45,246 nucleotides of DNA from Pelomyxa schiedti (Eukaryota; Protista; Evosea): contig JAHLWZ010000927.1 of NCBI GenBank assembly GCA_020536535.1, positions 1 to 45,246 on the forward strand. The letters are read 5' to 3'. A program made the translations under genes and the position numbers. The notes beneath the pieces were generated by a model. The model saw only the letters and a list, made by a program, of their open reading frames with translations. It made no database searches and had not been told where the DNA came from. Shown here piece after piece: positions 7,458-33,913 of this stretch (the first letter of the stretch is position 1; the number at the start of each line of letters is the position of its first letter).

Positions 7458-7537
<80 letters not shown>
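7458..7537. repeat. (GACAAC)n microsatellite, about 13 units
   Basis: Perfect hexamer array read directly. Confidence 0.95.
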
Positions 7538-7612
7538 GCGTCACGCTTTTTTATTGTTTTTCCGGCTTGCCAACAGCACGGAAACAACCACAAAAAGTTT
7601 TGCTGCCTTGAA

Positions 7613-8990: not shown

Positions 8991-9148
8991 TCACAGTCAG
9001 CTGCTTTCTGAGTCTACAGAGGAAATGAGTGAACCCTGTGGTGATCCTGTGGTTGATACCCTCAGGGCACTGGGTCACTCCCAGAGAACCAGCAAACAAC
9101 CCGGTTGTAGTTCCACGTATTTCACAGAATTACCAAACAAAATTATTA

Positions 9149-10000: not shown

Positions 10001-11615
10001 CTCGTTGGGTGCAACCGGACAATTTCACACATAAGTCCGAGTTATGGGTCGCGAACGTTTGTAACCATTTTTTGGTGCTGTTTGTGTAATTTGTGGACAC
10101 TTAATTTTGAGGTTCGCGTCGTTTTTGCCTTGTTTGTGGACACTTTATTTTGAGGTTTGTGTTGTGTTTGTGTGTGGATGAGGGTATGAGAGTGCAGTAT
10201 CAATGAACGCAACGATCTGGAACTATCTGTGAAGCAGAGGAGTTGCTACCATTGGGTAGATGTACCTGAAACTTATACAGATCGGCACCTGCGTACATAA
10301 TCAGATCAGATAAAAAAAAGAAGAAACTACAAATATTATGAGCCCAGGAAGCGTTTCATAGAAATGGAGCATTTGTGGACAGCGGAATAGAGGGCCTGTG
10401 CTTCATCAGCACCAAACTGCTCAAAAGCCCAAGTACACTCTTGGTTGTCCATTTGGAATGGCGATGTACAAAGTTTGTGAATACCTAGAGGGTTTTAATA
10501 AAGCAAAAGAGGTGAGTGAAGAACACGCACATCACCCATTCTGTTTGTTTGGCATGTAACCGCATTGTGGAGGTTGCATAGCATTTTTGACAAAGGAAAT
10601 CTCTATCCATTGATACCCTTGTCCCAGTGACCTTCACACCTGTGGCATGCGGTTTTCTTCTGCAAGGCCACCCTAGCAGTATACAAAACCTTGAATGGGA
10701 TTATGGCTTCATCGATTGTAACATTCCTGAATGTAATCGGCGGTTAGTATGAAATAATCACTGTCAAGAACACAAGGTAGTGAACTTCCAATATAAATAA
10801 TCAACAATCCAGCGGATGGATCTCAGCCTGTCATCTGATCCTGCAACACTCTGTTGAGGTCCCTGAAGGGAAGGAAGGGCTCAGGATACGACGGAAATAA
10901 GGGGAAGAGCATGGAAAAGGGAAGTCCAAGCCTGGCAAATGCTAAAGCACCTGTGCTGCATAAGGATGTTGGTGGGAAAAGGGAAAACAACATCAAGTTG
11001 ATTTTTGCTAAGTCCGGGTATCCTGTCAGCAAGAACTGCTTGCACATACTTGTCGATTGTTTGTGTTGCTGTTGGTGTTGGTTGTTGGGACTTTTTGACA
11101 AATTTATGTGCTTTTTCCAAGTGGTAACTATTGCCGGTTAGTAAATAATTGACTAGAGCTCCTTTTCCCTCTTCCTGGGGCCTCCTTTCCCACATAGTTC
11201 ATCCCTCTCCCTTTTTCTCATCACCACACTCAATAGTACCAGGAACCGTGGGCCACAGCACAGCGAAAACGGGAACCGGACTGAGTATTCTTTTATCTCC
11301 GGTGATCAAGGTACTCAACAATCTCACTGTGGTGCCAAAACCAACCACAGTGTTACCTCACTGTCACCCACAGCTCCATGTCTCAATAAAACTGCAAGCT
11401 GCCACACGGACAGAACGTGGCAGGCTCCCACAGCCAGCACTTGGCTCCCACACAATTTGTCAGCTTCAACCTGAGACGTCGGCTCTCATGCTGGCTGTCA
11501 AACAATTTGCTGGCTGCCACACAACCTGCTGGCTGCCACCCCTTGTGTCAAACACCAGACCGCCGATCCTGAGCGACGATAACGAAAATGACAGCGTTCC
11601 GGTCTGTTGATTATT

Positions 11616-14600
11616 TTATTCAGCCTTTGACAGCCAGGGGAAATCGAGGTAGAGAACATTGGGCCCATGCATTTGAATCAAGGTTTTGGCCATGTCCCTT
11701 ATCAAGGCATTAGTGCCCTAATTTTGATTGAGACAACATACACATTCAGGATCCCAAGTGAGGTAAGGCGTTGAATGAGGTATTCTTCCCATTCTGGTGT
11801 GGTACTCCACACATGTCCAGAGTGTGAGAAAGGGGGCTGACCTGGTTGAACTGGTGACATGAATGTGGAAGGGGCACCAGGTGCACATGACTCCCTGGCC
11901 TCCCACGGCCGTGTGGTGCTGGTGTGCATCACCGGCTTCTTGCCAGTCCTTGACTGTGCCCATGAGTACTGTGGCAGTGGTGGCAGTGCCACAGTGGGCG
12001 CGGCTGCTGCACAGGAAGCTGTGGTTGTGGTCGCCGTAGTTGTGCTTGTGGTTGCGGTTGTGTTTGTGTTTGTGTTTGCTTTTACTGGGGATGAGGAGGA
12101 TATTTTTGGTGTGGAAGTTAGTGCCTGAGGGACTGGGGATGGAGTTGATGATCGTGCTGGTGATTGTGGAACCGGCTTGGGTGTTTCCGGTGTTGCCGGT
12201 ACGGCTACTGGTTTTGGTGATGGTGATGGTGATTGTGGAACTGGAGCCTGGTATGGGAATGTGAAGGATGCTGGTTGTGCCTGTGGGGTGTTGTCTCTTA
12301 CTGGGGATGGAGAGTTCACTGATGGGGAGAACATGGGCGACTTGGGGGCTGCAAGGTGTATCAAAGGGGAGAGAGATGACAGCCACTGTGCGATGCTCTC
12401 AGTCACTTGGTCGGCAGTCACTGCCACTGTTCCAAGTGGGCAATGGGTTGCTGTTGCTATGTCATGGACCGTGGCTGATGTGCAACAACAATGGAGAAGC
12501 TTCACAATCACGCTGAATGGAACTCGGCCTGTCTCTGGCCCAAATGCAAACCATAAAAACAGAGGCAGAGCTGGGGATACAAACCAATGATGGAAAGGCA
12601 TGAATTGACAACAAGGAACATGAGATCTGCCACTGTGGGTGTTTGAACTTGGGAAAGTGCATCTGTGGAGTGTGTGCGGCGATTCACAACATCGAGGCAA
12701 GCATTCCTCCTGCTGAGGCAGTGCGCAACTGCTGATTCACTTGATTCATGGCACAGTCTTTGCACCTCTTTTTTTTGTTGGTTAAGGTGTGTGAAACCAA
12801 GTGATGAAACCTTCAACCTTCCACATCAGGAGCTGAAAGGTGCTTCATTTGATCCTCCAGGAAAGTTAGTTGAGAGCGGAGAGGGAGTTTGTCAAGTGTG
12901 GAGTCCACAATGTCACAGTTGATCATCTCAGTCAGAAGAACACCAAACCCCCACATGTCCCCTGGGAGCGTTTAGTGTTGTTGGGGCAAGGGACAGAACA
13001 ACAAAAAGCAGCAACCTTGAATTGAGTAATGATTTGTTGACATCTGTGGGGCCATGTGAATTGGAGTTCCAGGTCCAATGGTTTTATCTCCACTGCTCAA
13101 TTCTTGTGTGTTCATTCCACGTGATAGACCTGTTTTTCAAAACTGATGAGAAGAGACAATACCTCTGTGGTACGTTGCACACCAAAGTCACAAATCTTTG
13201 GTGTTCCATTGGCGTCGAGGAGGACATTGTTGCTGCTCAAGTCTCGGTGCATTATATTTTGCCTGTTATGAGTGAGTGAAGGAGCACACAAAAGTTTAGA
13301 AACCACACACAAACCTGTGAAGACTGTCCATTCCTTTTGCAACTCCAAGGGCTATGGCTGCGACCTCTCTGAAACTGAGCTGCCTCTTTGAAGGATCACC
13401 TCGGATTTGTTTCAGAAGTTGCCTGAGACTGCAACACATGAGCTCAGAAACAATCTGCAGGTCCCCAGATCCACCTGATCCAACGCAGATCCCAAGGCAC
13501 ATCACAATGTTGGGATGCCTCAATCCCATGGTGATCTGAAGCATTGGTTTTTCTTGGCTATTAGAAACAAAAGAAAACCTCAGCTTCCAATTTGAATTTT
13601 GCAATGTTGTGATCTGATGCAATGACATCAAAAAGTTTCTTCACAGCAACTTCTTGTGATGATGGAGTGTGAATGCACCTGTAAACAGTTCCATAACACC
13701 CACTTCCCAATGCGGAAACATGACTCAACTCTGATTCTTTGATTTCCATCACAGGTTTCATTCTCACCTTCAACTGTGCCACAGTGTTGGTGTGTTTTCC
13801 TTTTTTGGTTTGGATTGACATTTCAGAACAGAAGAACAGCAAACCTGATGATGAGGTGCCTTGTGAGAGAAGAGAGTACAACTGAGACAGTGTTGATGAA
13901 GTCCCAGAGAGTGACAATTCCTGTGTATCACTGATCAGAGAGACAACCTGCTCACTTTCATCCACTCTAAATCGCTTCTCAACTGCCATCCTGACAACCT
14001 TTTTGTGTCAGGCCAGTGTTTTAGTGAGTTGGTTTGTTGTTTTTACCTTGTCAAGAGGGCACTGTGAACAAAAGGACTCATGAAATGTTATGTTGCTTGT
14101 TTCTAGTGTGACCATCACTTCTTTCATGACGCACTTGTTTTCCATTTGATCTGATTTCACCCACATTCCCTGTTGAATGTGTTGCAGGGTGTGTTCAATG
14201 TCTTGGGTGGGAATGATGTCAGCCAATCTGAGGTAGAAACACACGTGATCACACACATTCTTCTTGATCCTTGAACTCCTTTGTTTGTATTTGCATCACT
14301 TTTCAGTGTAAGATTTTGACAACCACACATGGACACATACATTCCATTTGTTCCTCAACTTGTTTTTGAAGTCTTTCACTCTTACTTTTAAATTCCAAAA
14401 ACATCTGAATTGTGTGAGTTGCAACATAAAACAAAGTAATAGGCGCACTGCTGTTTCGCCACAGTCAATTTTGCACTGGAAACCACCTGTTGTTTCTTGA
14501 AAAACTCTCCCTTCAAAAGTCCCATCAAGTTTCCGGTTAGGCTCAACACACCTTAATGTTACTGTTCCCTCGCCACAACAACCATCCATTGTGAACATTC

Positions 14601-15376
14601 CAGTGAATTCGTCACCATTCGGCCACCTCTTTGTGCCTGACTTGAGCACACCATTCTTCCAAACACCCCAGATGGATGTGCCGTCACGTGCCCACGTTTT
14701 CATGCCTGCTCCATGCTCCTTCCCGGACTCCCAATCACCCTCATACCTTGAGCCATCACCCCAAATCCTGATCCCACTTCCATGGAACATTCCGGCCTTC
14801 CACTCCCCAGCGTAGCTCCCTCCTGCGACAAACAGCATCCTCCCTGTTCCACTCATCTTACCATGATCAAACTCACCGTGATAGATACAACCTGTCCCAG
14901 GTGAGTGCCACGTTCCACACCCATGCCAGGTGTTCCCTTCCCACTCACCCTCATACACAGTCTCCAGAGTTGCTGCTGTTGGTGCTGCAGCTGTTGCTGC
15001 ACCCGCCGTCTTCTTCACTAGTACTCTCTTCTGCACACCCCAGCCCTGCATATGATACTGCTTTTTCGTGTCATCCCACACCCACTCCCCTTCCCACACT
15101 CCATTTTTGCTGTGGTATGTGCCGCGGCTACGGCGGCCACCTCTGTACAGCCCCTCGAACCAATCGCCCTCCTTGGGCCTGAGGTACACGCCCCAGCCAC
15201 TCGCCCTCGTACATGTTGCCGTTGTCCCACCTTTGAAACCCACGTCCGTGTTGTGCGCCATCCTTCATCTCACCTTCATATCCACTTGTTATTACCACTG
15301 GTGGTGACGATGGGGTGGCCGTGGCCGTCGTTGCGTTTGCCACTATGCTTTTTACAGCACCAAACCACCCTTGCAT
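11616..15376 (-). CDS. MORN-repeat - UBL-like - TKL kinase - Pro/Ser/Thr-rich tail - possible UBA-like end; one frameshift near 15195
   Basis: MORN repeats (YEGEW..G..HG.G) at 14580-15260; GSGCYGTVY, VAVKK, LRHPNIV, HRDLSSNN, DFG, GTPIHMAPQ, DMWGFG across introns; last exon VDMAKTLIQMHGPNV…TAA 11616-11618. The first MORN unit changes frame near 15195 (pseudogene or assembly error). Confidence 0.7.
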
Positions 15377-17864: not shown

Positions 17865-17920
17865 CAACGTGCTTCAAGGAAGACACAAAAAGAGGAGAAT
17901 AGTTCAAGCTACATCTTCCT

Positions 17921-20416
17921 CTAAGTAAAAGTGGAGAGCTTGGTGAGGAACGACGGCTGGGGCAGGGATGGCTGTGGCAGGTCCTCTGGGCTGCGAGTGT
18001 ACACGACGACGTACTCGGAGTACGCCTGGTGCTTCGCGTACAGCACGATCTCGCGTGCCTTTGGGTTCCTCTCTGGGGCCACGGCGGCCTGCCTCGCCGC
18101 GTCGCACTGGTCGCACCTCTCCGCCACCACGGAGTCGTACGACAGCCCCGTCGCGTCGTTGGTGGGCGGCTTGCGCACTGGGTCCGCCAGAGTCCCGCGG
18201 TATTTCGCCGCCGTGTACTGCGATTGTGGGATTGTGGGAGGTTAGAGTTTGATGAATTTTGGGTTGGCTTACTGCATCACAGATGTGGGCGTCGCCGAGG
18301 GCCGCGCGGAATATAAGCATGCTGCATTCCACGGCTTCCGGGGCTGCGCACCGGCAATAATGGGTGGGAGAGCGCATTTCGTAATCGGCTTCTTGGTTTT
18401 GATCTGTTATTGCTGTGAAGTATTCAAAAGGGGTAGAAAAGTATGAATCACTGGCCCTGGAAGTGGCAGTAGAAGTAGAAGTTGTAGTCGTAGTTGTGCT
18501 TCTTGAGTGTTCTTCTTCACGGCGGCACGGAAGGTGGCACCTCGAGCAGGGGATGTACCAGTTTGACTTGGAAGAATTTTCGGCGAGGTAGAAGCCTGCT
18601 CCAAACATTCCTGTGATGTTGGACACGCGGAAGTCTGCTCCCTCTCGCGTTAGTTGTGACAGCACCTCACTTGAGCACCCATGAAAAAGGAGATATTCAT
18701 TGACTGACGAGTCCAGGAGCGAGGTCTGCATCGGCTTGTTGCTGAGGTACCTAGACGAAGGCTTTGCTGCTGCATTTCCAGACACTCTTTCTCTCAGAAT
18801 ATTTTTATAGTTGGTGTATGACTCCCACTGAAGTCTATCTTGGATCCGTATCACTCTTCTCACTTTCAATCCACCAGGCCATTTTCCCCTCACACACCCA
18901 ATTTCTAAGATGGGTTGGAAAGGCAGGTTTTATTGGTGGGAACTAGTCATATATTGTAGTGATGGAAATAAAATGTAAATACTTGATGAGGAGTTCTTTT
19001 CGTAAGTGGAGTATACCAATGAATTGATGAACTTGAATTCATCCGATTCTTGGCCTACCTCCACTTCTCTGTGTCCTGTTCAAATATGAACCGTAAAATT
19101 CAAGAAAGTAAGGCCCTAGTACCCGTTGGTCCCCACGGATCTGCGCCCCAGTACCGTGGGGTCCTGGAACATGTAAACCCTTCCGTCACTTGAAATTCAG
19201 TTCCCCATTTAAGAACTTTCTCCGAATCCACAAGTTCGTCATCAAACTACTAGAGAATCAATCAGGAATTCTTTAAAAATGGGAGAACACAGACCTCAGG
19301 GTCCATAAGGGCAAAGGTAGATGGATCTGCTCCGGTTCGCCTGCCAATGTTGACTTTCAATTCTCTGAAGGTGCTGCTGGGTTGGACTCTAAATTTTAGT
19401 TTCTCCAGTGTTGTTGTGGTCACAGTCACTAGAGTGAGACCTACCAGAGGAGGATGCAGATTAAGAAAGCGCTGTGCTGCAAGGATCGTTGAATTCAATA
19501 TTCGCATTACTATGAGGTCGGTTTTGTCATTTGTGCAGTCCTGATCTGCAGCGTAATTCGATATGAAAAAGACATCAGAAGGATGAGAGCCGCATGCTGA
19601 AGCAGCATATGATGCGATAATGTCCCGTTGTAGCTGCAATGTAATTGAGGCCTCATGAGTGATCACAACAACTGGAGCTATTCCCAACATCTGGAACCAT
19701 TTTCTCGGAATTTCCAGCGGTCTTACGAATTGGTTGTTGGCCAGCCTGGGATCGGTGGCTTTCATTACCCATATTACTGCATGTATGCGGTCCACGTATG
19801 GAATTTCTGGTCCCTGCTCGAAAGGTGAGCAGGTAGTTACGAAACCAAAGCCTACATACATCACTACGCTGTTGCTCTATGACTTTCTTAGCTTGGGTAT
19901 AATCTGACACAGCCTCATCTTCAGGATCCCATTTAACTATGTCTCCGTGCTGGTACATTCCCTCGATAATTCTTACGCAAGCCATTCCTTCAGCAGAATT
20001 TAAAGTGAACAAGCCCCTTGTGTCAACCAAGGTGATGCCCTTGGATATGGGAACATCTTCGACACGTACTGTTCCTTCCCACTCGCTCATAGTCCCCGGT
20101 CCTTTTATTTTACCAACTGTGGGAAACAATATGCCACAGAGTTAGGTCGAACAAGTACCTTCAAGAGCTCTGTCAATTGTGTTGATCAAGGAAGTCTTCC
20201 CTGTTCCGGTCTGACCCAGCACCGCAACCCGTATGCGTTTTTTCAGCTCTGGTTGTCCATCAAACACCTTTTGGTTGGGTTTAACGGGTCTCTTACGAGG
20301 GCTCGTTCACAAGTTGTCAAAAAAAAAAAAACCTCAATGCAGTGAGGGAAATCATTAACGTTGGTCCCGGGCACGAATCTCTTGATGTGTTGTCTGTGTT
20401 CTTCAATCTCAAACAT
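17921..20416 (-). CDS. IFI44-like P-loop GTPase - ubiquitin-like domain - tankyrase-type PARP (ADP-ribosyltransferase) fusion, at least 704 aa
   Basis: Exons 20416-20333, 20267-20159, 20116-19860, 19813-19295, 19246-19123, 19075-18983, 18904-18273, 18217-17921, all GT-AG and in phase (2115 nt). RIRVAVLGQTGTGKTS, LVDTRGL, DRIHAVIWV, VVVITH, SDVFFISNY, ILAAQRFL (IFI44-like); KFRVQPSSTFRELKVNIGRRTG (UBL); NEYLLFHG, GMFGAGFYLAENSSKS, RKPP…YDSV, REIVLY…YSEYVVVY (PARP). The true start may lie further upstream (to about 20660). Confidence 0.85.
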
Positions 20417-20896
20417 TTGCTGACTGGAAAAACTATCACTAACGGGCAGTTTCTTCTTATTGATTTTTTTCAGCGAAGCAAGGGAGCGATAACATACAGA
20501 CGGTTGCCGCAACGTTGTCCATGCACCAAAAAGAACCGCAGTGACAGCTTGTGGAGTGAGAACTGCAGATCCGTGAAAGAACGAGGCCCGACTGACGGTC
20601 AGGCAATGAGCCCGTGATTTTGAAGTGCAGAAGCAAGATTATGTCTCTTAGGAGACATTGATCTGATCATTCCCCGAAAAACACAGCTGTGTTTTCCGCA
20701 ACAGCACCGTTGTTACGGAGTTGTCTGACGTACCGATGTAGTGTTTTGATGTGCACAGCAGGTGGTCCGCGGGTGATGACGCCGAAAATAAGTTGAGGTA
20801 CCTTGCAAAAATTTCCGCTCGGAAACGCTTTTTTTTTTTGGTTGGAACAAACCTCAAAAAAAACAACCACAAAAAGGCTCTTTCTTTTACTGGGAA

Positions 20897-23800
20897 ATGA
20901 GTGGAATTTTGGACTGGTTCACTCTCAGAATGACCGGGTTCACCACAGCGTGCGCGACGGGGCACCTCGACCGCGTCGAGCTTCTCATCACGTCGACCAA
21001 CGCCCACTTCGACCCCACGGAGATCTCCCGCGGCCTCGTGTCGGCCTGCCGCGGGGGCCACGTTCCCGTCGTCGCCCACCTCCTCCGCCTTCCCGCTGTT
21101 GGCTCCGTCCCTTCGACCTACAGAGGCTCCCTCAGGCAGCCCATAAACTACGCCGTCCCATGCGATGGAATTATTAGAGGCACAGGCTCAGCCTCAGGCA
21201 CGACGCCCGGCAGCCCCCCCGCGGCAGGAGCAGGAGTGACCACGGCAGCGAGCGCGGCGCCGCCTGCAATAGAGACGGCGCTCGGGGCAGCGTGTCAGGG
21301 GGGCCATGTGGACGTGGTCAGGCTGCTGCTCGGGGAGCCGGGGATCGACGCCGGGGCGGGGAGCCCTCTGTGCCTCGCGTGCCAGGGGGGGCACGTGGAA
21401 ATAGTCAACATGCTGCTGGGGAAGCTGCTCGACACCATCAGCACCGACGAGATTGGCAGGAGCTTGGTGGCTGCGTGCAAAGGGGGATTCTACGAAATCG
21501 TGGCGGCGCTGATGGGGCTGAAGCCGCACATGAAGCTGAACTTGCTGTTCACTGTGGTTGCTGGAGAGACTCCGCTCTGCGCGGCTTGCGGGACCGGCCT
21601 CTTGGAAGTTGTCAACTTGCTGCTGGAGGCAATGGGAAACAGCACTGTTTACACCAGGGATATATCAGAAGCGTTTGTTATTGCGTGCAAGGGTGGCTAC
21701 GTTGACATCGTCAACAAGTTTTTGAGCTTGCCACGACACATGAGGCCTTCTCTCGCACACACGTCGAAGCTGGATAGGACTGCCCTGAGTGCTGCGTGTG
21801 AAGGTGGGCACCAGGCCATTGTGGACTTGCTTCTAAGAGAAGACCTTGATGTCAACCTTGGAAACCCACTGTGGCACGCCTCAAAGAACAATCACTTGGA
21901 AATTGTTATCAGTTTATTGAGGAATCCCACCATTACCGTGAACAAAATGCTCGAGAACAAAACGCCACTTGTCGTTGCCATTCTTGACAATCAGATTGAC
22001 AAAGACTTCCTTGTTGCCCGAGTGCTGATTTCACATTCTGGTTTAATTCCACCGCATTGCCAAGAAGATGTTGTACGCAAACTTGGGAGCTATCAAAAAT
22101 TTTGTGAGCTCTTACAACTCGGTAAGATCAAACAAATGATTAGTTGCTTCGAAATTAACGTGAATGATGCAGCAACCAGTATTGAGCTTGCGAATTTATT
22201 GTTGGATCGCCAACACCCAAGAAGTTGAAATTTGTTTCCATTTGATTTTTCTCACATCTTTTTAGATTTTCAACCGTTAATAAGGAGAGAAAGTGACAGG
22301 GAAGCAATTCTCGAACTTAATAAGAGTTCCAGGCCGCTGTGTTTTTGAAAGTACTTACACCCTCCAAAGAGAATGCCGAACTGGAAGCGCGAATCATAAG
22401 AATTCAGGAAGAAAGGGCATCGGAGTTGGCAGAAAGCAAACTCAACCAACAGATGTCTTATGAAATCCAAAATTGTGTGTATCATATCACTCACTACCCA
22501 ACCCTTAGTGAAATTGCTGTGTCAACCATCTATCAGACACCGATCACGTGCTGGCACATATGAAAGGGGGCTCGTGGTGCAATGTACTCCCTGACGGCAG
22601 TTGCAAGATGGGCCAAATCAAGATTTCGTTTGAGGAGTATCCCTCATTTGATGAAATCGTGTGCTCTTCTTGCCCTCTCGACATGGTACTGTAATGTACT
22701 TCTCTCTCTGTGATTTATTAATTTTCTCTGCTCCCAAAGGCTGTGAAGATCATCATCACAAGAAAGTATGGTGTTGACACCAACGAACTAGTCGTTACAG
22801 CGGTTGGAGCAAACAACTCATCAGAAGAACTGTTGACGGATACGAACAGAACCCTGTCAGACCTTCAGCAAGGCAGCAGTGGTGCTGACAGGGTTACATG
22901 GATGAAAGTCAGAATAACTTCCCCGGTGAGATTCCAAGAGAGCGACCTAAAAGTGGTGAGCACACTGGGGGTGGGGTCATATGGAACTGTTTTCAAGTGC
23001 CTCCACATCCCAACAAACACATTCGTGGCAGTGAAGGCTCTTCACGAGGCTATCCGGTCCGAGTTCAACAACGCCCGTTTTTTGGAGGAATTCGCGGTAT
23101 TTTTGTCCACCATCCTCCACAAAGCTTTTTTTTTGAAAGTAATGGCAATTCAATAACCAGATTCATTCTCGAATGAGACACCCGAACATCGTGAGATGCC
23201 TTGGGACATGCGAGACAAGCACTGGTGGACTCTGGATCGTCTCCGAACTCATGGAAATGAACCTGAGGCAGCTCCTTCAGCGGGTTTGTTATGATCGTTC
23301 TCTATTCCTCTCCAGATAATTGGCAAACAGAGAAGTTTGAGCTTTCAGGAAATCGTTGCACTCTCGTTGGGAATTTGCAGAGGAGTGGCCGCACTTCACA
23401 AGTACTGTTTAACCCAAATTTTACTTGGATGATGATGTTCATCAGGAGGAATATCATGCATCGCGACTTGAGCAGCAACAATGTTCTCCTGGATTCTCAT
23501 GGGATTCCAAAGATAACCGACTTTGGTTTTCAACACTCCATTTTCCGATTACTTCATGACAGTATTCATTGAACAGGTATCTCACGTGTTATCAGAAGTA
23601 CGCTTGTTTCCACTTTTTCCATTGCCGGCACACCCGTTTACGTGGCTCCGCAGATGCATACTCATCACTATGGAATCCAAGGTATGTTCTCACTTTTTTT
23701 TTTCTTGTTTTGCCATTTATCCCCACCATTTCACACAGGAGATATGTGGGAAATTGCAGTTTTACTGGTTGAGATGCTGACAGGAACAATACCAGTCGGA

Positions 23801-24381
23801 CACCAAGGAAGTGCAGAACAAATAGCCGACTTTATGAGAGATCTGAGGCACTCACTCTCTCCCCTTGACGTTACCGGTTTCTTCCTTCCATCCCTTGTGG
23901 ACCCGCGAATTGAGCACACACATACAGAAGTGACTCGGCTTTGCAAGGAAACCGAAGGTGGGAATATTCCCATTGCAGAGTGCCTCATACGACGGAACAG
24001 AATGCTGGAGGCACTGAAATGTGAGCCCAAGTTTTGTGCCAACATCCACCCGACTTGCGTCCGGCTATTCTGCCTCGTCGTCGAGTCCTGCCTCTCCATT
24101 CTCGGTTTGTTTCCTCCCGGCCACGTCACATTTCTTCACGCACAATCTCGCCTGTTTCATGTTCCATTCAGTTAATGCACCAAAACCTGACATCACACAC
24201 AGAGTGCAACCGGCCGCCGTTCCGTGCAATTGAAAAGGAGATCATGACGTGTGCACAGCTCGTGTTTGGATCGTGGTATGACGACGATCACGTGGAATCT
24301 TGCGTCGCCCGCTGCCTCGCCGCAATGGTTGCATCGTTATCCCCTTCTCACCACGGCACCACAACCTTGTCATCGTCGTAG
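20897..24381 (+). CDS. Ankyrin-repeat - coiled coil - UBL-like - TKL kinase
   Basis: Ankyrin units (TALGAACQGGHVDVVRLLL, SPLCLACQGGH, TPLCAACGTG, NPLWHASKNNH) in ORF 20897-22228; later exons give AVKIIITRKYGVD…TDTNRTLSDL (UBL-like), GVGSYGTV, VAVK, HRDLSSNN, DFG, GTPVYVAPQ, DMWE; stop 24381. Exon joins at 22230-22520 are uncertain. Confidence 0.75.
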
Positions 24382-25770
24382 TCACAGTCACTTCTCAGCT
24401 TTCTGTAGTCTACATAGGAAATTGAGTTAACACGACCTGTGTAGTGCTGGAAAGATCCTGTGGCTGATATCCTCAGGGCACTGGGCTACTACGACACTCA
24501 GTTAATCCAGTTGTAAAGAAAAATTGAAGACTGATGAAAACAGAGTTTCTTCACTTACTAAAAAGGGTGCCGAGTGTATGTGCAACAGATGAGTAAATAA
24601 TTCAATTTTCTGGTACAGATTTGACAGTTCCCCTTTAAAAAAAAATTCGAAAATAAATCAGTTTTAATTTTTTTTCCTCTTCTTTTTGGACTTCGACCCA
24701 CTTCCTAACTGGAGTCTCCGCCGTTGTTGTGTTTGGTGAGAATGTGCCGGTCTCATCGGGTGCAGGTGATTTATGAAGACGCCCAAACGATCTTCCTGAA
24801 CCCTTCCATCCCCCATGAGAAAAGGACCAAATGTTATTTTACTGTGAAATGATCAGTCCGGCAACAGATCCAAAAAAAAATCGCATTTTGGGGGATTGAC
24901 GCGTTTGGTGCGGGTCGATGCAGGCACAACATCGAACAGCTGCGTACCACGCGAGAGTAAGCAGTTTGTGTCAGAGAGCAAGTTCCAAGAATCATCGGGG
25001 AACTTGGTTCGGGACATAGCCGGCCATTCACAGGAACGGCCGGAGCGTTCATTCTAATGGCCTTTCCTTGAATCACCCGCCGTTGTACCACAGAAAGATT
25101 GTAAATAGGAATAATAACAAAAATAATTCTTCTTGATAGACACCATATCTGGGTCAAAGGGCGGCTGTTTTTTGGCCTGTCAAGTTCCTGTAAAAACAGC
25201 CGCCCTTTTTTTTGGGCGGCTGTCCTATCAAAACCATGTGCAAAACAGCCACCCAAAGGGGCGGCTGTCTGAAGTACTTCAGGAAGGGGTGGGCATGAAA
25301 GGAAACTGTGTCCCCTTGTGGGCTAGACTATCAAAACAGCACAGGAGCGTGATTAATCGAAGGGTGTTTGTTCTGGCTGGAAAGTCACGGTTACAAACAA
25401 CAGTGTAGTACAACAATAGGGGGAAGTAAAAAGGGGCAGCAACAACAACAGTACTCTGCCTCAGTCTACAGCAACAGATTTGTCCAGTCTCCGTTTTTTC
25501 GAAAACGATCAGAAAAGGCTGTTGGTGTCGCTGTGGGTGTCGGCACCCACGTATGTGTAGGTGTCGAGCGGCGGTGTTGGGAACAACAGCAGCAACAACC
25601 AAGTGAAGGGGGTGAAGGTTTACCCAACAGCGCCGGCGCCCACGCCATCAGCTGTGCCACTGAGGCCTACAACGACGCCAGCCCCTCACCACCAGGGCTG
25701 ACCGGACTCCACGTAATACACCTGCACCTACGACGCCGACGCCGACGACGCCTACACCGCCTACACCTAC

Positions 25771-25876
25771 GCCAACACCACCAACACCACCAACACCACC
25801 AACACCGCCAACACCGCCAACACCGCCAACACCGCCAACACCGCCAACACCGCCAACACCGCCAACACCGCCAACA
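25771..25876. repeat. (CAACACCGC/CAACACCAC)n 9-mer tandem repeat
   Basis: Read directly. Confidence 0.9.
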
Positions 25877-25920
25877 ACACTGACACAAACACACTGAAGA
25901 ACACACAACACACAACACAC

Positions 25921-26028
25921 AACAAGAAACAAGAAACAAGAAATAAGAAACAAGAAACAAGAAACAAGAAACAAGAAACAAGAAACAAGAAACAAGAAAC
26001 AAGAAACAAGAAACAAGAAACAAGAAAC
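25921..26028. repeat. (AAGAAAC)n 7-mer tandem repeat, about 15 units
   Basis: Read directly. Confidence 0.95.
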
Positions 26029-26661
26029 AGAACCCACACTTAACCAGCACACAAACTCTCCCAACATTAATGCCATCCAAGATGCTCCTTTCTTCTCCTC
26101 CCTCCCCTCCACTCACCCCCCATCTCCTGCTTGGCACCAACAAACCAACAACACAAACAACTAATTGGAGATAAGTAATCAAAGAGAAAGGAAAGGTTGC
26201 ACAAGGATAATGCACTGTAACAATACAAAAATTTACCTTGCACTTGTTTGGTGTGAGGTGGAAGCTGTTTTTTCACAAGGGTCCACATATATTCTTCACA
26301 AAACAAAAAAAATTTTCCCCTTAGAACTACCAACTGTCCACCTTGTCTACATGTTGCAGACTCAAACCTGTTAAAAACATTGAAAAAACATGGCTTTTCC
26401 CCATTGGTAAAACAGCCGCCCGGCGGCTGTTTTAATTTTTTTTCCTTATTAAAACAGCCGCCGGGCGGCTGTTTTGAGGGGGCGGCTGGGTGGCTTTTTT
26501 TACAGGAAAGTGAGAGGGAAAAAAACAGCCGCCCTTTGACCCAGATATGCCCCTATCACGCACACAACTCAAATGGGAACGAGAGTCCTATCATTTGGTA
26601 TTAGCACGTCAAGCTAAACACCAAAAACTTTGTGCTAAGGTGCTGAAACAAACACAATTAG

Positions 26662-26840
26662 AAGACCAACATCTTTGAAAAGCCAGTTCTTCATGCACTG
26701 AGGTATGCCAATATTGTGGGATCAACAGCCAAAACCTTCACTGTTAAGAATATGAGAGCTTGGCTTAGAAAGTACAAAATGCCTGTTACTGGATGCAGAA
26801 CCCCTCTCATTAAAAGAATACGAGCTGTAGTTGTTGGATA
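26662..26840 (+). CDS. Terminal exon encoding a SAP-like DNA-binding motif (gene remnant inside the IR element)
   Basis: After acceptor caattag: KTNIFEKPVLHALRYANIVGSTAKTFTVKNMRAWLRKYKMPVTGCRTPLIKRIRAVVVG*, fitting the SAP consensus LTVxELKxxLxxxGLxxSGxKxxLIxRL. Confidence 0.6.
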
Positions 26841-27599
26841 AAAAATTTTTTCGTCTGATTCGGTGCGACAGAGTCGTCAGATCGAAACCGGGAACAGGCG
26901 ATTTTTTTTTTGGATCTGTTGCCGGACTGATCATTTCACAGTAAAATAACATTTGGTCCTTTTCTCATGGGGGACGGAAGGGTTCAGGAAGATCGTTTGG
27001 GCGTCTTCATAAATCACCTGCACCCGATGAGACCGGCACATTCTCACCAAACACAACAACGGCGGAGACTCCAGTTAGGAAGTGTGGCTCAATGAAAAAA
27101 AATAATTCCACAAAACTCACTGTCAACTCAAATCAGTGGCCGAGTTTCTGACAAAATTCCTTTTAAGGGAACTTTGGCACAAAATTATGTTTTCTTCTTC
27201 ACTTGGGACCTTAATAACTCGGAAAATAGAGCAGACCCTCAGGAAAAAAATCCTGGAAGTCATTAAACACATAGGAGAGAGTCCATCCCAGAGATAACAT
27301 ATGTTGGGTGGAACACTGCCGAGACTCAGGGTTGATTTATCAAATTATCAGAAATTCCTTGATTGAAAATGAAGATAATCGTTACGACAAAGCAACAAAT
27401 TTGTGGGAACGGCGAGCTGAGGCGGAGCTCTGGTCAGTGCTGTAATTTCCCCGGGATTTTTTCCCTTTCCCGGAGGGGAGAATTTGGGGAGGGAGGGGAG
27501 AATTCGGGGAGAATGACTCTCCTCAGTCTTTTTGATCATCACTCACTCAATCTTTTCAGTCTCAAACTTGCTGCGACAGCTGAAAAACGCGAAGTCAAA

Positions 27600-28737
27600 G
27601 CGCCCATCAGGATCAAAAAGAGTGTGCATTGGTTGAACCTATGGAGCCAGCTGCAGAGGATCCTGCATGTGTAAGTTGCTGCCTTTGTGGAGATGGAGGA
27701 GGAGGATTCTTTGCTGTTTCTGAGCACAGTGCCACCTGATATTGCATTCCAAAGAGCACAGTGTAGCTTCTTTCCCATTCACAGGGTTTGTGCAATAGCC
27801 ATCAACCAAAGATGTAATGTGTTTGCACCACATACAAGCTCGTTTCACCTTTGGCCAAGAACAAGTATCGTGGATGCATACCTGGGATGTTGTATTGGCT
27901 TCCATTTGAGGAGGAGCAAGTGCTTATTTAACTTCAAAAGTAATGAACAAACATAGTTGTAATGGTAAGCATTATTGAACAGAGCATAAAGAAGCATATC
28001 AAATGTGGCACACCAGTAATATAATGATCGATGGTCCTGACGGATTTGCACAATGATGTGTTTATTTTTGTCCTCAAAGTTATGCACTTTGTTATACCTT
28101 CACCAGGGTGCATTAATATCAAACCAAATAGAATAAAGATTACAAAGATATTGCGATACAGCACTGAACCTCTTTGTTTAGCTTTTCGATCCCAAACCAG
28201 ACGAGTAGTTCTTGTGGTTAAATTTGGGATATTTGTGAGGATGTTAATGATCTTCTTCTTTTGATTTGCTGCAACTTTGGCATAATATGAAAGAGCCATC
28301 AGGTGTGGTGCCTGTGAAAATCACTTATCAAACTTTGAGAGTGTGAATGTCATCTAGTACAGTTTGGTGTGATGGTTGTGTCAATTGTGTTTGCCCACCA
28401 TCTAGCAAAGTGTAAACTTAAAAACAAATAATTGACTTGTACTTTGGTTGGTGCCATCAACAAACACAGATGTAGTTGAAGATGTGGTTGACATTGGAAG
28501 AAAACCAGTGATGGAACCTGAAGAAACAAATGGTATCACAGGGGGAGCAAGGATGAGAGGAGGTGGTGGTTGGGTTGCTCCAAGAAGCCCCACAGTTTGA
28601 GGGGGTGGTTGAAAAAGCTGACTACTCAAGAGTAGGTTGGTTGTTTGAGACTGCACAGGTCGTACCCATTGGATATGAATGATTGGCATGGTTTTCACTG
28701 TCTCCGTATTTTTTAGGCCAGAGACAAGCAAGTGCAT
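27600..28737 (-). CDS. Probable multi-exon gene of unknown function (Pro/Ser-rich 5' part, Cys cluster at 3' end), possibly decayed
   Basis: Fragmentary ORFs with plausible splice sites; CMWCKH…C…CSLEC…HC near 27700-27840. Confidence 0.3.
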
Positions 28738-29143
28738 TTATTTACACAGCTGTCTGGTGTCGGTTATTGTCGTTAAGCAACATGGTAATATGTAAACCAT
28801 TGTGCATTCTAATCTGTGGCCTGCTGACGTCTCAGTGCCGTGCCGGAGGCGATGCGTAATTACGAAGACAAAGATCACTTTTTGATGGTTAGGGGAAGCA
28901 GCAAACGAACAATCAACCATCACTGTTTTTGGAAACGCTCGATAAATTGTCTGACTGAGATTGTTTGTAGATCTCCCCAAATTCTCCCCTCCCCAATCCC
29001 GGGGAGACTTTCGCCAAAGGGATACAACAGGACTGGCTCCGGTGGTTCAGGCACCAAGTTGGCCAATGATATGTGCCAACTTCGGCAACTTTTTGAGGCA
29101 AGTTTTTCCACATTTCACAGAATGACGAGGAAAACGCTCTGAA

Positions 29144-32100
29144 ATGGCAACCAATTCAGTGCCCGCAGACGAGTGGGAGGCGTCGCTGGTTTCTAGTCTC
29201 ACAGAGGACGAATTTGACCCAGAAGACGTGGACGCGGTGGTCCTGGCGTGGCGCTCGCTCCCGCCCACCAGCAGGACCGCCTCTGGCTTCCTCGCCAAAT
29301 TCCCCAATGCTGCTGCGCTGGTCTCCGCGTGTCCCAAGTTGCGCCTCCGAGACGCCCGAGTGGTTACGGAACGCGTGCGCGAATTGTGGGAGGCGAGCGG
29401 GTGGACCGGCGCGGTTTCAAGGGCCGCGGCGCGCCGTGGCTTCGACAGGGTGGTTTTGGGTCGGTTGTGCTCCGCGGTGGCTGAGAGGTTCGACTCTATA
29501 GACGCCTTCGCGTAAGTTGAATACAACTAAAATGGGACATATAAAAATTTAAATAAAATATAAAATTTTCGACATTATTGACGGTGATGTACCCCTTTTT
29601 ATTAAAACTCAAAAAGGTGCGCCATTGCACACCCTGAGCTGGAGGAATTTGGTGCTGTTGGAGCAGAGACTCTGAAAATAGCTCGTACTTTGGTGGCAAA
29701 GAAATCGCTGTCATCACTTTCTAACATATCACGGCTTCGTGAAGAGGCGGAGCAAAAAGTTGCAGAGATTAGGCATCTCTCCAAGGCTGTGACAGATATT
29801 CTCAAGCAGTATTTAGCTGCTTCCGAGTCTGATTCCCATAGCAGCAATTCTCGTCTAAAGGCTGTTATGCTGAAACATCTCAGCTCTGATCCTGCAGCTT
29901 CCCTTCCTGGACCCTCAAGTGAGGAGCTTGTGACTCTCCTGGTGATTGGCCAAACGAATTCCGGCAAGTCTCAGTTCATCAACTCCTTGCTGCAATGCAA
30001 CCTGCTACCTGTCTGGGCCATCTCATGCACAGTATGTATGACTGTCATAAAGTATGGTGTCCAAAAGAAATACCGTCTCGGAACCAGGGAGGCGTCTGGT
30101 TCTATGCAAATCTCTTGGGGGGAATTAGTGAATATACGTGAGACTGCTCCCTCCGGTGACTTCCTCCTGCCAGCAATTGGACGAGACACAAAGGGTGAAG
30201 TGGACCTTAGTGTTACTAACGTTATACTGGAGGTCTTTTGGCCACACCCTTTGTTGCAAGCTGGTGTGCAGCTTGTTGATTCACCAGGAATGCTTGAGTC
30301 ACCTGAGCTTGAGAAGATTGTTTTTGACTATGCGCAAGGGCAACGCCTGGGCGTGATATGCCTGTTTGATTTGGCCACTGGTGGCCTTCCTGCTCACAAG
30401 CACTTCATCACTAAGTTGAACTTGGACCCAGCAACAATCTTCTTTGTTGGAAATAAAGTGGATACAGTTCGGCCATATAATGGACCTATTGACCCTGTAG
30501 ATAAGTTGTTTCACTTCACACAACAAGTCCTCGAGCAGATGGGGGAGCGGTTATATGATAGCCCTGACAATTTCCCCCGGTTTTCTGCGTATTCATCTTT
30601 GGAAGCATACCTTCTCAGTCAAAGTTCTGGAGACCAGGTGGAACCCCTCAAAGAGCCTCAAGCCATATTCTCCTTCAACGCGAAACTGGTGGATTGGATC
30701 AAAGCACTGTTTAATCGCTCGCTAGTCGCTGTGACTTCGCAGCTTCTTGACGCAGTTTGCACCCTTTCATCTGTAAATCTCATTACGTGGAACTACGCCG
30801 AAATAGAGCCGAAATTGCGTGGATGCTGTAAAAACATGAAGCTGGACTTTGAGGCAATGCAAAAGTCCATGATACCGATACTGCAGGGGCATGTCGAGGG
30901 TTTTTGTGAACATGTGTCAAGTGCTGACTCAATAAGAAAGATCAGTGAAAAAGTTACCAATGAACAAAAACAGATTGGAATGCAGCTATTTTCTGATGTG
31001 GACGAAGTAAGTTCCATAGTGAGCTCAGTACTTACCAACTACACGAACGCACTTCAAATGATTACAGCAGATGTAGTGAGAGACCAGTTTTTTGAGTTTT
31101 CCAAAGACTTTTTCAACCTCTTTACTGAGCAGTGTCAAGCAGTTATTCAGAAGTACGAGACTCAGCTAACAACTTTAACATTAGATTTTATCTTTTCAGA
31201 AAAGAGCCACCGTAGATTCTATGGTGGTACAACAGTAGGGTTGATTGCTGCTTTTGAAGCACCTTTTATAGCAGCATTTGCCCTATTAAAAATGTACGTA
31301 TTAACTGTGGCAAAGGTCTTGAAAGTGGGTCATGGGAAACTTTCTGAAGTTCAGACACGTGAACTGATGGTGCAATATAAAGTCAACAAAGTGAAAAGCA
31401 CAATTGCGATGATCACATCAACCCTTTCCCAGGATGCCCTCGAGATGATGCGCAAGTCCTGTGAGAACTATATGGTTGGCTTAGAGGCCCAGATTGATTT
31501 CATCTTGGAATGCATTAAGGCCAAAAAAGTATCAAACCTGCAGGATAGTAACATCTACTTTGTTGGAGTGCAACTACTGTCAATGATTTGTTCCCTCAGG
31601 TCACTTTCACTGCAGTCTGGCCACCAGTTACTCCCAGAGAAACCAGACATTTTCCACGGATTGCTTTTTGACAACTCGGTTCCTCTTTACCCAACAGAGC
31701 AACATGTTGTTGTCAAGAACTTCACCTTTTCCATGCTTTGTGATACAAACCGTACCTGCATGCACTTGTTTCAACAGTGGGCACTGGACCACCCCAATAT
31801 TTTGAGGCCCTCTTTCTTTGCACTTTCTCCTGATAGATCTTCCTGTCAAGTGGCATTTCCCTTCCTTCCCTTCACCTTGGATGAGTACAGAAACACATTT
31901 TCCATAGAACCTCCTTATAGTTCTACAAGTCGTGTCCAACAAGCCTATGATATTTGTGATGCAGTTTACTTCTTGCACAAGCATGGCATAACACACAGAG
32001 ATATCAAACCACAAAATATAATGGTCAATATGCAAGGAACTCCATTTTTGATTGACTTTGGGTGTGCAAAACCGGTTGCACCCCAGAATCTTTCAACTTT

Positions 32101-33913
32101 TACTGGTACACCAGGGTACATAGCCCCAGAGGTGTATGATGGTCGATATGACAACCGTGTTGATGTTTATAGTCTTGGGAGGACACTAACGCAGTACGAA
32201 AACCCAAGTGCTGTGGTGACTCCACCATCTCCACTGAATGATTTGCTCAAGAAGATGTGTATCAGTAACCCTGATTTGCGACCAACTCTTATGGATGTGA
32301 AGACCCAATTAATTGACATTGGAAGGAGGCTGAGCTTGGCCAGACCAGATGGCAAATATAACATCTTAAGTCTTGATGGTGGAGGCATGAGAGGACTTGT
32401 TGAGATAGAAATGCTGATGATGATCGAGAAAGCAACGGGAAAGAAAATTTGGGAACTCTTCCATTTGATTTCAGGCACAAGCACTGGAGGGATTTTAGCA
32501 ATTGCAATTGGCTTGCTTCATGTGGACTTAAATACCCTTAAGCACTTGTATATGACCTTGGGCCCAAAAGTGTTTGGGCACGGGTTTAGCAAAGCACATA
32601 ACGCATTTTCCTTCATGTCATCTCTCAGCTTTCAGCAGTATTCAAGTTCAACTCTAAGGGCTTTACTGTCATTGCACCTTTCTGGCCACAAGTTTCTGGA
32701 CTTTCAGCATTGTATACCGAAAGTATTTGTTACCTCAACACAGATTACAAGCAACATATCAGATATGGTGCTCTTCAGATCTTACCCAATCCCTTTTTAT
32801 GAAGGGCGAAACACAAGTGCTCCACGTAGGTCTGCACCAAACTGCGAATTGATAGATGGAGCGATGGCAACTGCTTCTGCACCAACTTATTTTGAACCTG
32901 TTCACATTGAACAATGTCCCTATATCGATGGAGGCCTGCTTGCAAATAATCCCACACAGGAAGCAATAAATGAGGCAAAGTTGCTGTGGCCGAACGCTCA
33001 TTTAAATCTGTTGGTATCGCTGGGGACTGGAAAGACCACTCAAAACATAGCTGTACCAGCAGAGAAAAACATTTCTCTTTTCCAGCTGGCTGAATCACTT
33101 GTTTCCATAGTAACAGACCCGGAAAAGATACATAGGCAAATACAGCTACAAATGGCAGAAAAGCCAACAGTAACATATGTTCGCTTGAATCCTGAGCTGC
33201 CCATTGATCTTCTGAAGATGGATGAATCCGACAAGGGACACCTAAGACAGATAGTTTCATCTACAAATGTATTTCTGCAGGAATCTGCCGCAGCATTTGC
33301 TCACATTCTCTCTTGCCTTGGAGTTAGTCCTCCTCAAGACGCTCCAAAACCCATACACAAAGGTATCACGGAATGGCACCCACATATGGAATTCCTTTTT
33401 CTCCCAGAGACTTCATCCCAAGACCTACGTCAATGTGTTTCCCGGCACTGTGCACAAATGAACCAGTGCCCCTTTGCTCCAAACGACAACCCAGTTGACT
33501 CCTTGTTCCTCCTCATTACTCATGCCATTCGTTCGGATGGCAATGCCATGGACTTGAGCAAATCAGTGGCAAAGTGGTTTTTACGCAATACTCAGTTACC
33601 TCTTGCAACCGGCAAGTCTCTGGGTGAAAGCTGTTCAAAGTTTTGGAGCACCTGTACTGACGCAACTTTGCTCCTCAGACTAAGTGCGGAATCAATACCG
33701 CATATACTTCCGTGGCTGCTGTATGTTATCGCTAACATTCATCCACAGCTGTGCTTGGTACTTGTAGCTGCCGCGAGGCCGCAATGTGTCCGCTTCGGCA
33801 GTGGCAATGTTGTTGTATCCTTGGCTCTTGATTTTGAAAAGGAACAATCTGAGCCACCAACAGAGAACCCTGAGGATTCCCCTGCTTCACAGTCAGCTAC
33901 CGTGAAGGTGTGA
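29144..33913 (+). CDS. Dynamin-like GTPase - Ser/Thr kinase - patatin phospholipase fusion (1554 aa, single intron 29512-29616)
   Basis: Exons 29144-29511 and 29617-33913 join in phase. G1 GQTNSGKS (29948), G3 DSPG (30278), G4 NKVD (30452); kinase HRDIKPQN (31994), DFG (32054), GTPGYIAPE; patatin DGGGMRG (32375), GTSTG (32474), DGG (32927). Confidence 0.9.

Follow-up and report, generated by a model that had tools for sequence, protein, structure and literature searches.

The domains combined at the locus described here are each known from better studied systems. The animal proteins IFI44 and IFI44L contain a GTPase of the septin/GIMAP-like P-loop class, and in vertebrates a TLDc domain forms their N-terminus. 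The tankyrases (PARP5a/b) carry ankyrin clusters and a SAM domain in addition to a PARP catalytic domain. DSTYK-like kinases, of about 900 aa, have a dynamin-type GTPase at the N-terminal end and a kinase at the C-terminal end; overexpression of DSTYK is reported to lead to cell death (Zha et al., 2004, as cited in PMC9573974), and phosphorylation of STING by DSTYK at late endosomes is described in PMC11933320. Patatin domains occur in iPLA2beta (PNPLA9), in the bacterial CBASS effector CapV and in fungal patatin-NLRs, where the controlling modules are ankyrin repeats, a cyclic-nucleotide signal and a STAND NTPase, respectively. At the level of gene neighborhoods, both bacterial defence islands and the IRG, GBP and GIMAP arrays of animals show local duplication, pseudogenes and transposons amid NTPase-switch genes, as does the locus reviewed below.

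The window, by which we mean the whole analyzed stretch of 45,246 nucleotides, is scaffold C927 of the anaerobic amoeba Pelomyxa schiedti. Contamination with human or other animal DNA was ruled out, as the matches carry the name Pelomyxa schiedti. Three real and unusual multi-domain genes, called A, B, and C, lie side by side. Gene A was analyzed through its deposited protein KAH3744315.1, which tblastn places at 20416-17924, while genes B and C (the latter as first exon and main ORF) were searched one exon at a time, without joined spliced models. The features are as follows:

7644..9034, plus strand: B', a truncated duplicate of gene B without most of the ankyrin repeats and the first kinase exon
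9148..10153, plus strand: C', a remnant of a gene C duplicate with large internal and 3' deletions
12574..15261, minus strand: MORN-repeat kinase gene, a bystander between C' and A, with a pre-kinase exon of the gene B type
17921-20416, minus strand: gene A, IFI44-like GTPase, ubiquitin-like fold and tankyrase-like PARP (deposited as KAH3744315.1)
17924..18929, minus strand: exons for the PARP catalytic domain of gene A, including a low-complexity insert rich in cysteine
within 19265-19876, minus strand: distal part of the gene A GTPase and start of the ubiquitin-like (UBL) domain
19265..20306, minus strand: GTPase exons of gene A, with the IFI44-like profile match and the P-loop and G3 motifs
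20145-20306, minus strand: P-loop exon of gene A; the G3 exon lies within 19656-20141, minus strand
20417..20896, no strand: head-to-head spacer between A and B, 480 bp between the start codons
20897..24431, plus strand: gene B, ankyrin-repeat kinase with Ank_2 and kinase exons; the 3' end is approximate (about 24400)
20897-22225, plus strand: ankyrin ORF of gene B (Ank_2, E 1e-34)
22722-23153, 23143-23316, 23267-23569 and 23573-24172, plus strand: kinase exons of gene B
24551..29042, no strand: nested dispersed-repeat insert of 4.5 kb between B and C
24699-24884 and 26898-27084: 186-bp inverted repeats of the outer element of the insert, enclosing the 1.4-kb element
about 25141-26549: inner 1.4-kb element with terminal inverted repeats of about 62 bp
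29144..33913, plus strand: gene C, DSTYK-like dynamin-type GTPase, kinase and patatin phospholipase (Pfam)
29144-29515, plus strand: candidate first exon of gene C; the main ORF is 29690-33913, plus strand, 1407 aa

Gene A encodes a protein of 699 aa (P0097/KAH3744315.1) that bears the GenBank name 'Interferon-induced protein 44'. A Pfam scan of P0097 (E <= 0.01) returned only PARP, MMR_HSR1, and RsgA_GTPase, and the TLDc domain was not found in that scan. The GTPase carries the G1 and G3 motifs, and in a Foldseek comparison of the structural model with known folds this part resembles septin, GIMAP, and Toc GTPases. Searched as a profile, the third exon finds a Branchiostoma 'interferon-induced protein 44-like' (E 1.8e-17) as well as many animal IFI44-type proteins of 300-450 aa, which makes the gene A domain homologous to the GTPase of IFI44/IFI44L; in amphioxus, an IFI44-like GTPase of this kind is fused to a TIR domain. 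Compared with IFI44/IFI44L, gene A adds a ubiquitin-like fold (Pfam E 0.0056, with a beta-grasp pattern in the model, block pLDDT of about 56-78) and a C-terminal PARP, and it does so in an amoebal host without an interferon system. The PARP domain (Pfam E 1.3e-9) has tankyrase-1 and -2 as its closest solved relatives (E 7e-9), tankyrase also being a fold match, and the catalytic triad H465, Y496, E657 (H-Y-E) is invariant among four homologues. The PARP half of the model is of low confidence and was not used for structural claims. After the tyrosine motif comes a conserved Cys/His cluster, at a position that we take to correspond to the short zinc-binding motif of tankyrase. In contrast to tankyrase, the Cys-rich loop contains a long insert of low complexity, and neither ankyrin clusters nor a SAM domain are found in gene A, whose N-terminal part consists of the GTPase and the ubiquitin-like fold. 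Full-length relatives are confined to the Archamoebae; the only ones found come from Pelomyxa, one Mastigella eilhardi transcript and one environmental protein. In Mastigella, the gene is conserved and transcribed. Gene A may be a single-chain switch-plus-effector protein, in which an IFI44-like domain under the control of GTP, followed by a ubiquitin-like fold, precedes a PARP that would ADP-ribosylate targets and consume NAD+.

In gene C, Pfam identifies Dynamin_N (residues 84-228), Pkinase (733-833), and Patatin (893-1093) in the main ORF. Residues 82-257 align with Dynamin_N 97-262 of a Ptychodera DSTYK-like protein (29% identity, E 2e-13) and residues 747-830 with its kinase at 744-827 (42% identity, E 2e-15; both BLASTP), and the nearest Atlas clusters combine Dynamin_N and Pkinase, so that gene C is collinear with DSTYK-like kinases. 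It differs from them in that the kinase, of which Pfam recognizes only profile positions 85-187, is not the last domain, but is followed by the patatin domain and a 300-aa tail, about 520 residues more. The patatin match covers the full profile (positions 1-191 of 191), and the oxyanion glycine motif, the GxSxG serine and the DGG aspartate are all present (ORF and P0001 alignment). Among solved chains, 6aun (iPLA2beta, E 3e-22) and 8zr9 (CapV, E 1e-16) come closest to the patatin part, and the sequence matches include fungal patatin-NB-ARC/NACHT proteins; unlike in these proteins, the module that would control the lipase in gene C consists of a dynamin-type GTPase and a kinase. Another protein with a similarly positioned patatin, P0002 (1225 aa), was considered and rejected as a full-length relative, since its patatin alone aligns. 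Genome-wide, gene C matches lie on C927, C1256, C433, and C682, to which a match of the patatin part alone on C829 is added; separately, C882 carries a Dynamin_N ORF of 1004 aa. The sole full-length relative is an old paralogue on C682, which has lost the kinase catalytic motifs and retained the lipase. Two of the only approximately 11 NACHT loci of the genome are located 7-12 kb from this paralogue, which suggests that the gene C family may tend toward immune-type genes. In the proposed order of events, the protein would first assemble in a nucleotide-dependent manner through its dynamin-type GTPase and a helical stalk, probably on membranes, the kinase with its intact catalytic motifs would come next in the chain, and the added patatin, whose catalytic dyad is intact, would then cut membrane lipids. 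For both A and C, we infer enzymatic activity and the order of activation within the chain from domain content. The view of the preliminary description that both genes couple an effector that consumes NAD or lipid to a P-loop GTPase switch holds at the level of the single gene, and each may plausibly be a switch-plus-effector protein.

Gene B is of a commoner type. Its family of ankyrin or repeat kinases has at least 50 loci in Pelomyxa schiedti, the other members being scattered or arrayed elsewhere; the exon with the pre-kinase region and N-lobe has 134 genome matches, and the closest paralogue lies on C762. Genes A and B begin on opposite strands, with start codons at 20416 and 20897 that are 480 bp apart, in agreement with the preliminary description; this is within the <1 kb spacing used for bidirectional promoters. 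However, as the genome holds 19,876 genes in 52.4 Mb (PMC8887013), a divergent spacer of 480 bp is ordinary. Other parts of the earlier inventory were borne out to differing degrees. Of the three UBL domains listed, only that of gene A is supported; the one assigned to gene B has no Pfam match, and its AlphaFold model, built from two sequences, is of no use at a pLDDT of 38.8. The gene described as TRIM-SPRY shows a RING and two B-boxes below threshold and no Pfam match to SPRY in the tested ORFs, while in the gene described as ankyrin-SAM-RRM the SAM and ankyrin matches are significant and no Pfam match to RRM was obtained in the tested ORFs. A RhoGAP gene and the MORN kinase (MORN repeats E 4e-11; 31-58% identity to the gene B kinase exons in tblastn) are ordinary genes interleaved in the window.

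The rapid turnover that had been read from the locus is evident in its duplicates, truncated copies and transposon insertions. Genes B and C were indeed duplicated jointly: 7745-9034 matches 23135-24431 at 89%, 9148-9244 and 9334-10000 match parts of gene C at 81-85%, and the resulting B' and C' are truncated remnants. Additional B-C copies are present on C1256, a near-identical copy of the window locus (94-97% identity) on which gene C is full length and frame-broken, and on C433. The insert between B and C proved to consist of nested dispersed repeats, with 254 first-look candidates genome-wide and copies at 82-99% identity; they have no counterpart in the C433 copy, where only about 86 bp take the place of the 4.5 kb. 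Gene A has a different history. Its matches lie on C927, C571, C1057, C4417, and C1256, and homology to the nearest paralogue (C571, dS 0.51) is confined to 17928-20408 and stops at the ends of the coding region, which indicates that gene A arrived recently and, since homology stops at 20408, that the 480-bp spacer did not travel with it. Gene A was copied here as the gene body only, introns included, at a dS of about 0.5, at a time when the B-C unit, too, underwent duplication (dS 0.1-0.56). Taken together, the arrival of A and the contemporaneous duplication of B-C suggest that A, B, and C were brought together incidentally, as genes arose and were lost locally.

The neighborhoods of the paralogues point in the same direction. 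The divergent neighbor of gene A is different at each paralogous locus: on C1057 it is an IFI44-like GTPase, no ankyrin kinase lies upstream of the C571 paralogue in the stretch read, and the A-B head-to-head pairing is kept at neither. No B- or C-like gene was found near these two paralogues in the parts of the contigs that were read, no A- or B-like gene beside the old gene C paralogue in the part of C682 that was read, and no B-family match on any of the three contigs; matches of the A, B, and C families overlap only at the window locus and its copy C1256. Instead, a NADAR-like gene follows the gene A paralogues on both C571 and C1057, and this candidate ADP-ribose remover is probably the older genomic partner of gene A, of which no remnant is detectable downstream of A in the window, even at E 10. 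Given about 29 PARP loci, 31 Dynamin_N loci, and 9 patatin loci in a genome with a very large kinome (1492 first-look kinase candidates), about 0.39 PARP-dynamin pairs, 0.13 PARP-patatin pairs, and 0.2-0.6 pairs of PARP with the B family would be expected by chance at the spacings seen here, so that co-occurrence is within chance. If only the small families are counted, with about 3 loci for A and 2 independent ones for C, the raw chance expectation for adjacency within 11 kb is about 0.003, a figure that concerns a pair picked after the fact and is not trivial even so. Values of dN/dS are 0.05-0.5 for whole domains and 0.05-0.3 for catalytic domains (0.05 between gene A and the C571 copy over residues 400-523, in the PARP exons), which leaves no arms-race signal at whole-domain resolution.

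These results bear directly on the reading put forward in the preliminary description, a coordinated cell-autonomous immunity island. In such an island, A and B would share a bidirectional promoter, the ankyrin repeats of B would sense a ligand and its kinase would signal, and A and C would execute the response by NAD+ consumption or ADP-ribosylation and by hydrolysis of membrane lipids. The 480-bp spacing, the fact that all three genes encode switch, sensor or effector domains of the kind usual in immune proteins, the duplication, decay and transposon insertion at the locus, and the non-ancestral upstream DNA of gene A, which may leave it dependent on the shared spacer, are all compatible with such an island. 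However, its linkage is conserved at no paralogous locus, the adjacency is young (dS about 0.5), gene B belongs to a large dispersed family, domain co-occurrence does not exceed chance, two ordinary genes are interleaved, and dN/dS is well below 1, indicating purifying selection on the coding regions. The check proposed in the preliminary description, for co-localization elsewhere beyond chance, found no recurrent linkage in this genome. A neighborhood that is young, unrepeated at related loci and no denser than family sizes predict does not support an island, and the absence of conserved linkage together with similar density elsewhere is largely the outcome that the preliminary description itself had named as speaking against it. 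Bacterial defence islands recur across genomes, whereas here there is one young locus and its near-identical copy, and each immune cluster of animals is an array drawn from a single family, whereas three unrelated families meet in this stretch. We therefore regard a coordinated island as improbable. A variant in which gene A, copied without its own upstream DNA, came under the promoter of B, so that A, B, and C are co-induced as a newly assembled sense-signal-execute module, seems to us similarly improbable; if true, such a module would act against intracellular bacteria or viruses, or police the endosymbionts of the amoeba.

It is easier to imagine, although still rather unlikely, that the three are independent housekeeping genes without any role in conflict: C as a DSTYK-type endolysosomal kinase that gained an iPLA2-type membrane-remodeling lipase, A as a GTP-controlled, tankyrase-like protein that regulates protein turnover, and B as a routine signaling kinase. 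The proximity of the gene C patatin to iPLA2beta, a housekeeping enzyme, and of the gene A PARP to tankyrase, the purifying selection on the catalytic domains, the conservation and transcription of gene A in Mastigella and the size of the kinome all fit this explanation. Core housekeeping genes, however, do not usually show recent turnover in copy number with pseudogenes, and IFI44-like GTPases are found joined to TIR, vWA, and kinase modules, while the C682 paralogue, which gave up its kinase motifs and kept the lipase, adjoins NACHT-phospholipase genes. On balance, we favor a young, duplication-prone stretch of genome that contains three independent multi-domain genes and not one system, an interpretation that we consider somewhat more probable than all others combined. 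Three observations count against this interpretation, namely the low raw chance of the A-C adjacency, the exact head-to-head position of A relative to B, where A, its own upstream DNA lost, may use the promoter region of B and so be co-regulated with it, and the proximity of the old gene C paralogue to NACHT loci. With the three genes taken as independent, each may still act in defence, regulated cell death or the control of endosymbionts.

The failure of the island guards against over-reading domain-rich windows in the Pelomyxa schiedti genome. What is new lies in the single genes: neither an IFI44-like GTPase joined to a ubiquitin-like fold and a H-Y-E PARP, nor a DSTYK-like dynamin-kinase joined to a patatin lipase, was found described in the literature searched, where searches on DSTYK and dynamin, on IFI44 and PARP fusions and on IFI44 and Amoebozoa returned nothing relevant; both architectures are already deposited under generic names. 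Their presence in an amoeba suggests that the IFI44-type GTPase and the DSTYK scaffold are older than animals, and that protists use them as switches for NAD- or lipid-consuming effectors. The architectures of A and C thereby offer testable handles on what IFI44 and the N-terminal part of DSTYK do biochemically.

The Pelomyxa schiedti genome has been described as 52.4 Mb in 5337 scaffolds with 19,876 proteins and 7.4 introns per gene (PMC8887013), and the assembly containing the present contig (C927) totals 52,367,397 bases in 5337 contigs. It was prepared from seven micromanipulated cells (PMC8887013), so redundancy and errors in it are possible. Database matches for the window and its paralogues bear the name of this species, and the DNA is neither human nor animal. 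The preliminary description of the window, which was largely right about its genes and duplications, went on to propose a coordinated cell-autonomous immunity island at 17921-33913. Judged by the refuting condition set in that description, the island is not supported: the linkage on which it would depend is not conserved and the co-occurrence of its domains lies at chance level; the window is best read as a young birth-and-death hot spot with three independent genes. Its main features are as follows:

6449-7345, minus: RhoGAP gene (E 2.5e-16), immediately upstream of the shortened gene B copy; contig C1256 has it at its end as well
12574-15261, minus: MORN-repeat kinase gene
17921-20416, minus: gene A, IFI44-like GTPase, ubiquitin-like fold and PARP (KAH3744315.1, 'Interferon-induced protein 44 [Pelomyxa schiedti]', 699 aa, mapping back to 20416-17924)
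20897 to about 24400, plus: gene B, a 443-aa ankyrin ORF (Ank_2, E 1e-34) followed by kinase exons
24699-24884 and 26898-27084: 186-bp inverted repeats, 98.9% identical, of an outer element around the following one
25141-26549: 1.4-kb element with terminal inverted repeats of ~62 bp; many genome copies at 82-95% identity
29144-33913, plus: gene C, including a 1407-aa ORF (29690-33913) with Dynamin_N (84-228), Pkinase (733-833) and Patatin (893-1093)

The exons of gene A, read as stop-to-stop ORFs, carry in order the P-loop, the DxxG motif, the distal GTPase with the start of the ubiquitin-like segment, and twice a part of the PARP domain, whose nearest match is tankyrase; a Pfam scan found no TLDc domain in the protein. 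In the AlphaFold model the GTPase and ubiquitin-like segment mostly reach pLDDT values from the mid-50s to 89 per 10-residue block and the PARP half is of poor confidence; Foldseek matches the model to septin, GIMAP and Toc GTPases and to tankyrase. When the third-exon sequences of the window gene and its paralogues on C571 and C1057 were combined into a profile and searched against 1.8 billion representatives, the 699-aa protein itself was recovered, together with a Branchiostoma 'interferon-induced protein 44-like' (E 1.8e-17) and many coral, hemichordate and amphioxus proteins of 300-450 aa. Two fusion proteins were also among the matches: in one, from amphioxus (Branchiostoma belcheri, 732 aa), the IFI44-like GTPase domain is joined to TIR, and in the other, from P. 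schiedti (729 aa), it is joined to a protein kinase. The domain looks like a mobile switch module. Full-length relatives of gene A are few (the C1057 paralogue, a Mastigella eilhardi transcript and one environmental protein); their alignment shows no variation at H465, Y496 and E657 or in a Cys/His cluster.

Gene C retains motifs of all three of its domains that can be read directly from the ORF: G1, G3 and NKxD in the GTPase, HRD and DFG in the kinase (PK_Tyr_Ser-Thr match at 699-833), and the glycine motif, GxSxG and DGG in the patatin. Its neighbours in the protein Atlas are of the DSTYK type, with Dynamin_N and kinase, and BLASTP aligns its residues 82-257 (GTPase) and 747-830 (kinase) with 97-262 and 744-827 of a Ptychodera DSTYK-like protein, so that the positions correspond in both. 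The patatin domain is nearest to iPLA2beta and next to the CBASS effector CapV. Word-based searching returned a single full-length relative, the paralogue on C682 (34% identity), whose kinase lacks HRD and DFG and whose lipase motifs are retained; the remaining matches have only single domains in common with gene C.

Genes B and C were examined per exon rather than as joined spliced models. The kinase exons of gene B contain the glycine loop, VAVK, HRD and DFG, and the gene starts 480 bp from the start of gene A on the opposite strand. The ubiquitin-like module proposed ahead of its kinase could not be confirmed (no Pfam match; AlphaFold pLDDT 38.8). The genome contains 134 matches to the exon that encodes this proposed module together with the kinase N-lobe; many of them are in tandem arrays on C530, C418, C695 and C361, and ~50 of the 134 span the pre-kinase part at 50-62% identity. 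Together with 1492 first-look candidates in a Pkinase scan of the genome, this indicates that kinases with ankyrin or other repeats form a very large family in P. schiedti. The pre-kinase exon of the MORN-repeat kinase is related to that of gene B (31-58% identity), and therefore one kinase cassette is paired with various repeat types.

The paralogous loci argue against conserved linkage. Matches to gene A occur on C927, C571, C1057, C4417 and the end of C1256, those to gene C on C927, C1256, C433 and C682, and the two sets overlap only at the window locus and its near-identical copy C1256. None of the 134 gene B exon matches lies on C571, C1057 or C682, and tblastn over the fetched parts of these contigs was likewise without a B-family match. 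The A paralogues have other neighbours:

C571 (stretch L046:8444-9448), plus: NADAR-like gene, on the same strand as and 3' of the A paralogue
C1057 (stretch L049:5097-6149), plus: NADAR-like gene, on the same strand as and 3' of the A paralogue
C1057 (stretch L049:1052-1783), minus: second IFI44-like GTPase, 456 aa, head to head with the A paralogue, ~800 bp apart

The similarity to NADAR/YbiA is weak but recurs: Pfam gives NADAR at E 6.6e-5, and E. coli YbiA (2b3w) matches a profile of the two sequences at E 5e-5. Since this downstream gene is common to both paralogues, PARP and NADAR-like neighbour may constitute an ADP-ribose writer-eraser pair, and the arrangement on C571 and C1057 is the older one. 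The window contains no NADAR-like remnant. Sensitive alignment confines the homology between gene A and its C571 paralogue to 17928-20408 and C571:15599-18274, almost exactly the coding sequence plus introns; the flanks show none even at word size 7. Gene A of the window is a recent gene-body copy, set beside gene B without promoter or downstream DNA.

The proximity of the domains is compatible with chance. With ~29 PARP, ~31 Dynamin_N and 9 patatin merged loci genome-wide, the expected number of chance pairs (n1 x n2 x 2d / genome size, a rough estimate that ignores contig ends) is 0.39 for PARP-dynamin within 11.4 kb, 0.13 for PARP-patatin within 13.5 kb and 0.2-0.6 for PARP and a B-family exon within 3.9 kb. 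PARP and Dynamin_N are near each other only on C927 (C187 has both, ~85 kb apart), and the raw expectation for the small A and C families is ~0.003, for a pair picked post hoc among roughly 20,000 genes. The RhoGAP and MORN kinase genes, both of an ordinary kind, are interspersed. For the TRIM-SPRY and ankyrin-SAM-RRM genes reported nearby, ANK and SAM give significant matches, those to RING and to two B-boxes stay below threshold, and the ORFs tested yielded no SPRY or RRM. Elsewhere, C682:2333-11012 holds two tandem intronless ORFs (1370 and 1408 aa; L053:2333-6442 and L053:6789-9998 with L019:3-1013, both minus) combining PLA2_B, a cPLA2-type lipase, with a NACHT NTPase, 7-12 kb from the divergent dynamin-pseudokinase-patatin paralogue of gene C (L011:1219-5105, minus). 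The genome has only ~11 NACHT loci, and this phospholipase-armed NTPase cluster looks more island-like than the window, though it too was spotted post hoc.

Turnover is evident in the window. It contains truncated copies of the gene B 3' part (7745-9034, 89%) and of parts of gene C (9148-9244 and 9334-10000, 81-85%). C1256 (10.7 kb) is 94-97% identical to 6841-10001 and 17890-18078, and its gene C copy is frame-broken though full length; it represents the same arrangement, either as an allele or as a copy made very recently. C433 (12.5 kb) carries the end of gene B and the start of gene C at 93-95% and lacks the 4.5-kb insert between them. Both contigs differ from the window in insertions and deletions and could represent alleles or redundant haplotigs in the seven-cell assembly, in which case apparent copy numbers are inflated. 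The insert is built from dispersed repeats nested in one another, for which the genome has hundreds of matches, and no transposase ORF was recognised in its nested elements. Within it, low-complexity repeats at 25368-26215 produce long spurious ORFs on both strands, with imperfect tandem copies at 25740-26032. Pairwise dS for gene C is 0.12 (C433), 0.41 (C1256) and 0.56 (window remnant) and is saturated against C682; for gene A it is 0.51 (C571) and about 2 (C1057). All pairwise comparisons of A and C give dN/dS of 0.05-0.5.

As far as their predicted domains indicate, genes A and C represent architectures not described in the papers searched, in which switch and effector are combined in a single chain, and a role of both in defence, cell death or symbiont control is plausible.
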